This document shows, piece by piece, positions 19,110 to 31,063 of a stretch of DNA of 64,000 nucleotides (its first letter is position 1; each line of letters opens with the position of its first letter). The stretch is from assembly GCF_037042905.1 (NCBI RefSeq), contig NC_087260.1:16182001-16246000 (forward strand), given 5' to 3'. Source of the DNA: Lytechinus pictus. Lineage: Eukaryota. The translations under genes were made by a program, and so were the position numbers. The notes under the pieces were generated by a model. That model was not told the origin of the DNA. It did no database searches and saw nothing but the letters and a program-made list of their open reading frames with translations.

Positions 19110-19760
19110 CTTTGGTTTTGGCTTAGCAAGATCCTGAGAATGATGAAGATCGGCTTTTGCCCTCGTTGACTCGCTAATATTCACAAGTTTTTTAGGTGGT
19201 GCATCAATATGAACAACATTATTATTGGCAAGATCGGTGGATGGTGTCTTTTTTCGCTCTATTTCAGATAAGTCATTACACGTAACAAGGTCTGGTAGAT
19301 TATTGCTGAGGGGGACCTCCTTAACGACCTTGACCTCAGCCTTGGCTGGCTCTGATTTCAGGGCCAAGTCTGGGAAATTCCTGTCCTCTGTCTTTGGTTT
19401 GTCTATTCGCCATGTTGGGAGGAGTTCGTCGCTCTTTCGCTTCTCTGTGATGTCTTCGTCACCTCGTGGGACGATACCCGGAGGTAGCGCGACAACGGTA
19501 CAGAAACCGTAGTGGATGGCGCGACATACAAAGGGCGCCTCGGCGAGCACACGCTCCTGCACATTGATCTTTGATGGCCTTGGGTCTTTGGTTTTTGTCT
19601 CGCATTCGCGGGCAAACTCCGGGCTGAATGGGCAGCCGAGAAAACAGTTGTGGACGGCACGGACATGCCGCTGGTCCACGTGCACGCTCGAGTAGACCAT
19701 GACACGCGAAGCAACGAGTTTGTAGCTGGCAGGCTTGAGGGTCGGGTGACATTTCGGCAT
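19110..19760 (-). CDS. PPP2R3A/B: PP2A B'' gene, alternative PR130/PPP2R3A-type N-terminal exon (217 codons)
   Basis: First ATG after an in-frame stop; CpG-rich open frame. ASYKLVASRVMVYSSVHVDQRHVRAVHNC aligns with the recalled human PR130 start ATYRLVVSTVNHYSSVVIDRRFEQAIHYC. Phase-0 donor AAG|gtaaat fits the 12932 acceptor. Confidence 0.8.
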
Positions 19761-22700
19761 TCTATTCACAATAACCTCCCGTTTCAAGAGAATTACAAGA
19801 AAAAATCATAAATGGATATATCAAAAAGTCAAAAGATGCTAAAATATACTAAACCCATGTAGAAAAGAGTATGAACACATCCTCGATGAATGTAATGGTA
19901 TCATCAAAATTACTAGAAAATATTTTGTATCACGATTAATTGATATCTTAGACGAATCATGACGGATATTCTCACTGAGTCACGACAAGCACAAATGTTT
20001 CCTCTTGTGGTGGTTGAGCAGATCCTGCAATATCATTTTCCGGGACACAAGCTAGTCTAAACAAACAATAGATCACACCTTCCTTAGATCAAATTTGATC
20101 TCCAAACACAAATCATAGACCTTTCTAAATTGAAAGGAGAATGTTGACATTAAAAAAAAAAGACCAATGCCCGAGACTTCAGATGCCAATTTGAAATTGA
20201 GTGAAGACACAGATGTAAATAGTGACTCTGCACATACTGGAATCAAATCAGAACAGTACCCCCGAATAATCCTAACAGTAATTGGACACGATGTTTAGCC
20301 ATTAATGTCGTCTCCGACATCCAAAATAGCGCCACAAGTAGGCCTGCATTCCAGAGATATGATTCCTGCAGGCGAGCTGATGCATAAGGATCAGTCATCA
20401 CACAATAAATTCTCGCCTTACGTGCCCCGAAACATGCAACATATATATATTCCAAGAATATGATGATCCTTTGGAAATGTCAGAACTATTTGATATATCC
20501 ACATGTATGTGTATATCCTCCTTGTGCTATGAGTCATGCGATTGGTATCCAACAGGGTCTCTCCCCTGCTAACACTCTCTTCTACAAATCAAATAGAATC
20601 ACCCTAAATGGTTCAATCAAGTCCTCAGAATGAGTCAAAGTCCTCAGACTGCTGGCATTCCGATGCATGAGGTAATTAATTTTTTCCCCTCCCTCGCACT
20701 TCTCTGGTGGGGACTCCGCTCCAATCAAGAGAACCTGCTCGCCTTGCATCAACTACCCCAGACAATGGGGGATATCCCACGATTGTTCTCTCAGACTCCA
20801 CACGTTTTTTTCTTCCTCTTTCCTCTTCCTCGAAGCATCAGGCTCGGGTTTCACAACCAGTGCCTCGACGATGGGGTAATCTTTTGAACACACCGCCGAG
20901 TTCATTCCCCGGGTACCGTCAATGTCCCCTTCTCCGACCGTACGCGACTCTTAAATGCACAGGTGCATTTGGAGTTCACTCAGATTAATGGTGCATCCCC
21001 TTACCGCTTACCAAAGAAATATTGAATGTCACCAGCACTTTGGTAAATTTGTGTCCTTTACGATAAGCCAGTTCGCATCACCCCTGGCAACCAACTCGCA
21101 AGGAATGCAACATCCCTCTTTTCGATGTCGTTAGCGATACATCAAAGATGAACGAGCGGGTGGCGGAGGCACATCTTTCTCCTCTGCCCAATTTGTAAAT
21201 CCTCTTATTGCATTGTCCATCAGCGACCTTTTTGCTTGGTAGGTTTTTGGTGTGATATGGCTTTAGCTCGGAGCACACTACCAACAACGCATCTGTGAAT
21301 CGAAGCGGTGCACATGTGCAAGTGTGTTTTGAAACGCTGGAACAGCCATCAGCTAGTCTCATGTGCAGACCTGGTTAGCGAATGTTTACATTTAACAGCA
21401 CTTGTATTCCAATATTTTCATTTCCATAATGATATACCGGTAGATAAAAACTTTAACAAAATAGGTACAGCACATAACTGTGGGTAAAAATTTAGAAGTT
21501 TATTCATTTCTTGTGTGTAATTCAGTCAGTGATAGAAATTTTTCTTTGCAAAAGTCATATCAAGTGTTGGGAGGAAGCAAAAGGATATCATATGGAACTC
21601 TGTCTATTATGCCTAACTAAACTTAGCAGGAAAAAGAGGGAGCCTGATATTTTCACAATTTATATTTTCTTATGAACAATCTTGGTGAAGAAAAAAAGAA
21701 ACTTTCAAGATTTCATATTTTATCCATAGTTCAGAGTAGGAAATACAGGCAATTTTGCCCTAATGACAGCCCAAATCGGTCCTAAAATCCCCAAACGCAT
21801 GCTTTGGGACAACCATTTGTTCTAGAGTCGCTCCAAGATCCGTCACAAACAATATTGAAGATTAATAGAAAATCAATGGCAGAATAATTATTACATTTAC
21901 TGTTTATTTGCTTGTTGCCCCTAAAAAGTATGAAAAAAAAAAAAAAAAAATAGCCCCTAAAATTTTGCGATTGCCCCAATGTGGAAAAAAAGATAGCCCC
22001 TAAAAAACAAAAATGATTTCCTACCCTGTCATACATGTAGTTGAACACCAATGTAGTTAACTTTCACTAAAGGGGGGGGGGGGGCTGAATACCATCTCAG
22101 TTTTTGCAATGAGGATTATGTTTTTTAATACCTAAAATTAAAAAGGTAATTATAAAAAAAAACACTTAAACGATTTAGAGGTGTACCAAACCAGGCATTG
22201 TTATGTTTTATCTTAAAGCTGAAAGTTTAAAGACCCTCCTTTCCTTTTTGCCCCTGCCTTTTGCTGAAGAACGTAACCCCAGGCTTCAAAATGCGCCTGT
22301 GCAAGCTATCAATATCAGAACAATCTGGATATGTCATTTTCATATTTTTCAAAACCACAGACTTAACCACAATGAATTTTAAAACTATTTGTGCTCATTA
22401 GGTGTGCGTTCCTTTTATCAATCACTTTGCACTATAAAATTGCATTGATTGACTGATTCAGAGCATGCGGCCATTACAAACTCTTTCTTGATTAATTTCT
22501 TTTTGGGGAAAATCAATCATCAATCATTAAACAATCTTTCAAATTGGCAATAATTACATGTTCATATATCTTGAAATATTATGACAATATAGTGATTTTT
22601 GGGGGGCTAATAAAGCAAGTTCTCGAGAAAGGAATGCCCAGGACAAGCATTTCAGGATATAATTATTGCATCTAGTTGGTGGTAGAAGTTCCTTTATAAT

Positions 22701-30706: not shown

Positions 30707-31063
30707 CTGAGAAGCTGATGACGATGAGAGCGACCTGGAAAGTCTTGAACTGCTGCTTCTTTTCCTAGGGCTCCTGGGGCTAACGGAGAGCGTCGGGGGC
30801 GGGGAACAGGGCGGCGTCGAGGTCGGCGAAGAGCTCCTCAGGAGAGGCGAGGCGGGGCTGCCCCCGTGGTTCTTGAACGGAAACCCGGTGGACATTGGCG
30901 AGGACAAGATGGGGTCACCTCTGACCACCATCTTAAGGTCCTCCCGCAGGGCCTTCTGGGTGTCCGACTCACTCAACCATCTCAAGAAGAGTTCGTCCAC
31001 CTTCAGCTTCAGGACAGGGCGCAACGACGACATGGCAGCAGATGATTGGTGGCGGAGCACCAT
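30707..31063 (-). CDS. PPP2R3A/B: PP2A regulatory subunit B'' gene, PR70/PPP2R3B-type first coding exon
   Basis: Translates MVLRHQSSAAMSSLRPVLKLKVDELFLRWLSESDTQKAL..., matching the recalled PPP2R3B N-terminus (LQPVLKMKVDELFLYWLSE). Ends at phase-0 donor CAG|gtgagt. ATG at 31063 or 31033; candidate upstream acceptors at 31176 and 31217. Confidence 0.9.

Follow-up and report, generated by a model that had tools for sequence, protein, structure and literature searches.

The vertebrate protein PR130, a B'' subunit of protein phosphatase 2A (PP2A), has been investigated in the context of Wnt and EGFR signalling, cell adhesion, the development of the heart and the response to replication stress, and its long N-terminus, which no Pfam family covers, has been treated as a speciality of vertebrates. 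PR130 (B''alpha1) and PR72 (B''alpha2) are both products of PPP2R3A, in which one EF-hand core is combined with alternative 5' exons, and a similar organization was found in the subject of this analysis, a PP2A B'' (PPP2R3) gene in 64,000 nucleotides (nt) of DNA from the sea urchin Lytechinus pictus (the whole of this stretch is called the window, and all coordinates refer to it), with a core ~55% identical to that of PPP2R3A. PPP2R3B (PR70/PR48) and mouse Ppp2r3d (PR59) likewise use alternative first exons, which are a known route of diversification in the B'' family (PMC2529318). A search of the literature found no paper on a PR130 Cys/His start predating vertebrates, or on PR70-type and PR130-type starts together in one invertebrate gene.

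Comparison with these vertebrate genes indicates that the L. pictus locus is very likely a single alpha/beta-type B'' gene in which two mutually exclusive 5' coding exons, 1a and 1b, are placed on a common exon 2, and that both starts were present in the deuterostome ancestor. Exons 1a and 1b, each with its own ATG and phase-0 donor, would be spliced to the same exon 2 and give rise to two regulatory subunits that have a common EF-hand core for binding of the PP2A A/C dimer and differ in their N-terminal targeting module only, exon 1a providing a PR70-type start and exon 1b a compact Cys/His module followed by a lineage-specific charged tail. The gene lies on the minus strand; its exon borders were read directly from the sequence and translated, and the features are as follows.

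31063-30707, minus strand: coding part of exon 1a, 119 codons from the ATG at 31063, donor ...TCTCAG/GTGAGT in phase 0, PR70-type N-terminus
31030-30908, minus strand: conserved PR70-type motif, residues 12-52 of exon 1a (LRPVLKLKVDELFLRWLSE...), matched by BLASTP to vertebrate B''beta-type N-termini
19761-21500, no strand assigned: stretch enriched in GC and CpG, immediately upstream of exon 1b, which may act as an internal promoter and 5' leader
19760-19110, minus strand: coding part of exon 1b, 217 codons from the ATG at 19760, donor ...CCAAAG/GTAAAT in phase 0
19733-19476, minus strand: Cys/His module, residues 10-95 of exon 1b, two conserved blocks with a variable linker between them
12932-12738, minus strand: common exon 2, acceptor ...cttttcag/TTGTTT, ending CAG/gtaatg, encoding LFQEQ...FYFP... 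and the start of the B'' core
7591-7488, minus strand: exon 3 (ACRCPKFWRVPLY...), part of the common core, peptide matched exactly between AG and GT borders, found by tblastn
569-467, minus strand: exon 4 (ITKQCHDDASRFF...), part of the common core, peptide matched exactly between AG and GT borders

As the preliminary description had stated, there are two separate minus-strand first exons with phase-0 donors, either of which is taken in phase 0 by the acceptor at 12932, and the peptides it had quoted are present in both exons exactly as written. Exon 1b encodes a PR130-type N-terminus and then an urchin-specific charged tail; its frame is open for 15 codons before the ATG, with an in-frame TGA at 19808-19806. 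The window contains only the 5' part of the gene, as nine further exon matches were detected by tblastn below the window start (window coordinates -1538 to -27915), giving a gene of ~59 kb, and all core exons were placed at this locus with 84-100% identity.

Both splice joins are present in predicted proteins of sea urchins. Exon 1a is identical to the start of Lytechinus variegatus XP_041482304.1 (P0135), S. purpuratus XP_030837846.1 (P0009) maps to it by tblastn, and the join between exons 1a and 2 (...SSSASQ/LFQEQ) is letter-exact in both of these proteins. Residues 1-217 of L. pictus XP_063967008.1 (P0001) are those of exon 1b, with 100% identity, and the join between exons 1b and 2 (...KPKPK/LFQEQ) is letter-exact in this protein and in L. 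variegatus XP_041482303.1 (P0004), a full-length protein of 692 amino acids. The two L. variegatus accessions are consecutive and lie on one contig and are therefore isoforms of one gene.

Regarding the identity of the core, P0004 matched the structures of PR70 (4I5L, E 2.9e-162) and PR72 (4I5J, E 1.6e-134) in the PDB, and the P2R3B EF-hand, EF-hand_13 and EF-hand_7 domains that mark the PP2A B''/PR72 family were found, with PF21161 and PF17958 detected in the exon-1b model P0001 and PF13499 in addition in its full-length relatives P0006 and P0007. With exon 2 alone, PF21161 was matched weakly (E 0.013) and did not reach the curated cut-off, and neither of the two first exons is covered by a Pfam family. 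From this likeness the urchin core is predicted to bind the PP2A A/C core dimer. Every B'' core match in the 812-Mb genome, as well as the only match of exon 1b, is at this locus, and the gene is thus single-copy in L. pictus.

Pairs of PR70-type and PR130-type RefSeq models with one core, on one contig and usually with consecutive accessions, were also detected in several other ambulacrarians, listed here with the PR70-type and PR130-type handles as paired.

Asteroid: P0125/P0008
Probable ophiuroid: P0129/P0010
Ptychodera (XP_070538326/327): P0130/P0013
Second enteropneust: P0146/P0141
Apostichopus (XP_071837982/984): P0131/P0014
Two crinoids: P0134/P0012 and P0015/P0133

For Diadema (P0007) and Saccoglossus (P0140), only the PR130-type model was seen. 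The pairs are direct orthologues of the L. pictus gene and, like it, have two alternative starts on one core; they differ in being automatic predictions with no stated link to PR130 or PR70. Their automatic NCBI names are inconsistent, the PR130-type isoform often being called alpha-like or delta-like and its sister isoform beta-like. The earlier proposal that one gene carries both starts is therefore borne out by the uniqueness of the core and of exon 1b to this locus and by the existence, in six or more other ambulacrarians, of isoform pairs derived from a single gene.

Alignment of both first-exon peptides to vertebrate starts gave significant matches in each case, in keeping with the earlier assignment of exon 1a to the PPP2R3B/PR70 start and of exon 1b to the PPP2R3A/PR130 start. 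Residues 12-52 of exon 1a have 51-54% identity over ~40 residues to the vertebrate B''beta/PR70-type N-termini P0120 and P0098 (E 6e-12 and 2e-14, BLASTP), and the PR70-type motif PVLK.KVDELFL.WLS is present near the start of the exon.

For exon 1b, BLASTP gave 16 identities in 34 residues (47%) with a rodent-type PR130 (E 6e-7) and a match to the coelacanth PR130 (E 2e-6). Vertebrate PR130 sequences were gathered with residues 1-400 of P0004, which returned dozens of B''alpha proteins of ~1100-1200 amino acids together with short echinoderm and hemichordate relatives. In a profile-profile alignment by hhalign, the N-termini of seven ambulacrarian proteins (alignment A1) and 20 vertebrate PR130 proteins (A2) were matched over 66 columns with a probability of 98.4, an E-value of 1e-14 and a score of 76.4, with both conserved blocks in register, so that residues ~10-95 of exon 1b correspond to the first ~60 residues of vertebrate PR130 (Y..V....Y.S..D.......H.C...C ... 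C...H...C), to which they are homologous. In an alignment of 31 sequences (A3), residues D29, H37, C43, C79, H83 and C87 (L. pictus numbering) are invariant and A11, Y13, Y23 and C39 nearly so.

The likeness might instead be due to chance or to convergence of Cys/His-rich stretches, exon 1b then being an echinoderm invention, and two results could be read in this way, namely that pairwise identity to vertebrates is limited to ~30-35 residues and that three urchin proteins were all that phmmer retrieved with the entire exon-1b peptide from 1.84 billion representatives. The latter is not evidence against homology, because the matched block is too short for a database of this size. The score of 76.4 compares with 11.7 ± 3.0 (maximum 27.6) for 100 column shuffles of the vertebrate alignment and 6.8 for the reversed alignment, and these controls exclude chance similarity; in addition, both blocks of the module align in order, enteropneust and holothurian intermediates bridge the urchin and vertebrate modules, and the module has the same position in each case, at the extreme N-terminus, in an alternative first exon of an orthologous gene joined to the same common exon. 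An independent origin of exon 1b is thus extremely improbable.

The homology of exon 1b to PR130 is confined to this module. Residues 95-217 of the urchin exon, its tail, had no similarity to residues 55-700 of the coelacanth PR130 (best E 3.8), other ambulacrarians have only 75-130 residues ahead of the common exon, and the long extension of PR130 (~600-700 residues, including the ...ITGEAINLASGKIKEF... block) was not found in the urchin. Of the PR130-specific part of ~650 residues, only the first block is common to exon 1b; what urchin and PR130 have in common is the short Cys/His module (~60-90 residues) and not the ~650-residue extension. As suggested before this analysis, the module is not a vertebrate addition, since it is found in echinoids, asteroids, a probable ophiuroid, holothurians, crinoids and enteropneusts.

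A further feature was observed at the very start of these proteins, where a conserved Met is followed by a nearby Cys (MPKC, MQRC, MRRC, MHHC, MQTC; window 19760-19751) in all seven ambulacrarian PR130-type isoforms of A1. This Met-Cys start is absent from vertebrates, which start MAA.Y, and from the Saccoglossus protein P0140 and that of the second enteropneust (P0141), both outside A1. It may provide an extra ligand or a lipidation site.

Regarding the use of a PR130-type exon as a first exon, a transcript proves this isoform in a holothurian, in which a Logan contig (L009, 4293 nt) has one uninterrupted open reading frame of 572 codons comprising a PR130-type start and the full core, preceded by a leader of 371 nt with stops in all frames and without PR70-type coding sequence. 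This structure is that of a spliced holothurian mRNA with the PR130-type exon as its first coding exon. For L. pictus, low-depth contigs from two runs, the RNA nature of which is a guess, cover exon 1b at 19117-19475, 19238-19448 and 19597-19805, and the same runs gave one contig at 20972-21130 and other short pieces upstream of exon 1b. The contig at 19597-19805 is unspliced through the sole in-frame acceptor candidate (~19775), which argues for a leader continuous with exon 1b. The GC content upstream of exon 1b is 0.39-0.49 and the observed/expected ratio of CpG is 0.58-1.17, as compared to ~0.32 and 0.35 in the neighbouring intron, the raised values extending from 19.0 to 21.5 kb against this CpG-poor intron. 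This rise makes the stretch a candidate for a separate internal promoter from which exon 1b would be transcribed in L. pictus.

Further upstream, short repeat pieces at window 21745-22006 and 23230-23437 have many RNA reads and high-depth contigs that continue into unrelated sequence; these are dispersed repeats and not exons of the B'' gene.

Exon 1b could alternatively be an internal cassette, entered from exon 1a at a weak acceptor (gag/GTT, ~19775) five codons before the exon-1b ATG, so that both N-termini would stand in tandem in one protein. Such an order is seen in an old 885-amino-acid urchin model from MetaClust (P0006), which reads ...SSSASQ-IPVYI-MPKCHP..., that is, exon 1a, five codons and exon 1b, and the open frame upstream of the exon-1b ATG in L. 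pictus would permit it; however, P0006 is visibly faulty, with duplicated internal segments, and no RefSeq model in more than eight species fuses both starts. The L. pictus contig that runs unspliced to 19805 through the candidate acceptor and the non-coding leader of the holothurian mRNA likewise speak against tandem N-termini, as does the acceptor itself, since the in-frame candidate is a poor GAG and a better one, the TAG at 19762, would not keep the frame. An internal cassette is accordingly considered highly improbable. P0006 itself is probably a prediction artefact of a redundant assembly.

A second alternative concerns the product rather than the splicing of exon 1b, which might serve mainly for a separate short protein comparable to Xenopus XN73 or mouse PR130/B''alpha3, with the N-terminal module but with neither EF-hands nor the ability to bind PP2A. 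Truncated products of the XN73 type have been described in vertebrates (PMC2529318), and in the L. pictus RefSeq annotation the exon-1b model is a distinct locus of 397 amino acids that reads into, and stops within, the intron following the exon at window -1538 to -1660. Against this, full-length exon-1b-type models exist in L. variegatus, Diadema, asteroids, holothurians, crinoids and enteropneusts, the holothurian PR130-type mRNA is full length, and the truncation falls at a 15-kb intron with a nested gene, where models typically break. A mainly short product is therefore very unlikely. The early ends of the L. pictus models lie at this 15-kb intron, which hosts a nested acidic-repeat gene, and may reflect a broken annotation or else a truncated product like XN73.

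The reading of exons 1a and 1b as mutually exclusive, ancestral first exons of one full-length B'' gene has to be set against several observations that weigh against it. The RefSeq models in which the joins are seen are automatic predictions, and those of L. pictus with exon 1b end early, at 397 (P0001) and 378 (P0005) amino acids, P0001 being filed as a separate uncharacterised gene and ending by reading into the intron mentioned above. No raw reads were found on exon 1b in two L. pictus RNA runs, of each of which ~6% was sampled, a count that carries little weight, and the reads and contigs over window 18900-24899 contain neither a joint nor a loose end at 19110. The module was unseen outside deuterostomes, in word-indexed searches with the N-terminus that are very lossy and missed known relatives too; these searches reached no protostome, cnidarian, tunicate or amphioxus protein, and feature searches of the ESM Atlas gave no usable match. 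In addition, an AlphaFold2 model of the module made from the 31-sequence alignment was unreliable (mean predicted local distance difference test score 55.9, predicted template modelling score 0.34), so that a zinc fold is unsupported.

In jawed vertebrates, the two starts of the urchin gene are distributed over different genes. PPP2R3A has the PR130-type start, and no PR70-type start was found among the alpha proteins listed; PPP2R3B and Ppp2r3d have a PR70-type start that matches exon 1a to the extent given above, and no PR130-type start was found among the beta proteins listed, the second start of these genes being of the PR72/PR48 type and not a Cys/His module. With the two-start arrangement already present in the deuterostome ancestor, the PR130 type would have passed to PPP2R3A and the PR70 type to PPP2R3B and its relatives in jawed vertebrates. 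The unrelated starts of PPP2R3A and PPP2R3B would thereby be explained, each being one of the two alternative first exons of a single ambulacrarian gene.

The view that the urchin gene represents the state before the vertebrate duplication fits a maximum-likelihood tree of 26 cores, made without an outgroup, in which the 11 ambulacrarian cores lie on one side of a branch with 100/100 support and the vertebrate alpha and beta cores on the other. The tree is consistent with a duplication on the vertebrate side and is not proof of it.

A third start complicates this scenario. The PR72-type start of PPP2R3A (...DPDLR.EL...CDFVLPSRFKKRLK; ...DPDLR.EL..LARGCDFVLPSRFKKRLK) was sought across 124 kb of the urchin locus and not found; tblastn with four vertebrate PR72/PR48-type starts gave a best E of 0.035 for a match that contains a stop and has the wrong strand and context. 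This start was seen in both the alpha and the beta genes of vertebrates and is part of the vertebrate ancestral set, and since it is unseen in the urchin locus the two-exon picture is incomplete, which refines the scenario put forward in the preliminary description.

One vertebrate-side cluster at 90% identity contains five proteins, the last 450 residues of which are 100% identical and all of which enter the common part at ...VPSAAKKEK. Their starts are as follows.

P0098 and P0142: PR70-type start
P0144: PR72-type start
P0145: PR130-type start, 1107 amino acids
P0143: another start

The extension of P0145 aligns along its length with the coelacanth PR130 (E 8e-36), and its first 60 residues match the PR130 profile (E 3.5e-7). 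The five proteins are products of one vertebrate-side gene that has kept all ancestral starts. Its core branches beside the gnathostome alpha cores with weak support, and from this position in the tree it is probably from a jawless fish. Like the urchin gene, it has PR70-type and PR130-type starts spliced to a common exon; unlike the urchin gene, it also has a PR72-type start and the long PR130 extension. The architecture of several starts on one core thus persisted on the vertebrate side, and the gene also places the PR72-type start within the vertebrate ancestral set.

Regarding the function of the module, its invariant His and Cys residues may bind zinc, and by analogy with vertebrate PR130 the module may dock PP2A onto LIM-domain proteins of the LPP/zyxin family. 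The LPP-binding site is said to be a zinc-finger-like motif in the N-terminus of PR130. The binding of PPP2R3A to the LIM domains of LPP is cited in a passage of PMC7401799, with reference to Janssens 2016. Taken together, the module could be an ancient zinc-binding adaptor to LPP/zyxin LIM domains at cell adhesions, at least as old as the deuterostome ancestor, with the choice of promoter deciding between the two modules and with these promoters split between PPP2R3A and PPP2R3B in jawed vertebrates; this combined proposal is tentative, and we regard it as somewhat doubtful as a whole. If true, alternative first exons would here be a clean example of subfunctionalisation, and sea-urchin embryos would provide a single-gene system that allows the isoforms to be eliminated one at a time.

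Both isoforms are already in RefSeq as predictions and the evolutionary point is implicit in the automatic annotations, so that the gain is incremental. It lies in the recognition of the first ~60 residues of PR130 as a conserved Cys/His module shared with echinoderms and hemichordates, so that the ancestral function most probably resides in this part of the extension, and in a single-gene invertebrate model for isoform-specific knock-down.

Other features of the window include a ~180-bp repeat at 64-258 with more than 80 genome matches of ~78-81% identity, many of them on both strands at the same place, which looks like a palindromic element resembling a miniature inverted-repeat transposable element or a short interspersed nuclear element. 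An open frame of 113 codons (...ITPVLRELHWLPVRSRIVFK...) at 1494-1832 on the minus strand, inside a B'' intron, looks like the tail of a retroelement open reading frame. Runs of N are present at 16093-16261, in the intron that separates exons 1b and 2, and at 40093-41086. Exon 3 is directly flanked, at 7433-8041, by low-complexity sequence rich in CT, for which the GC skew of the plus strand is strongly positive.

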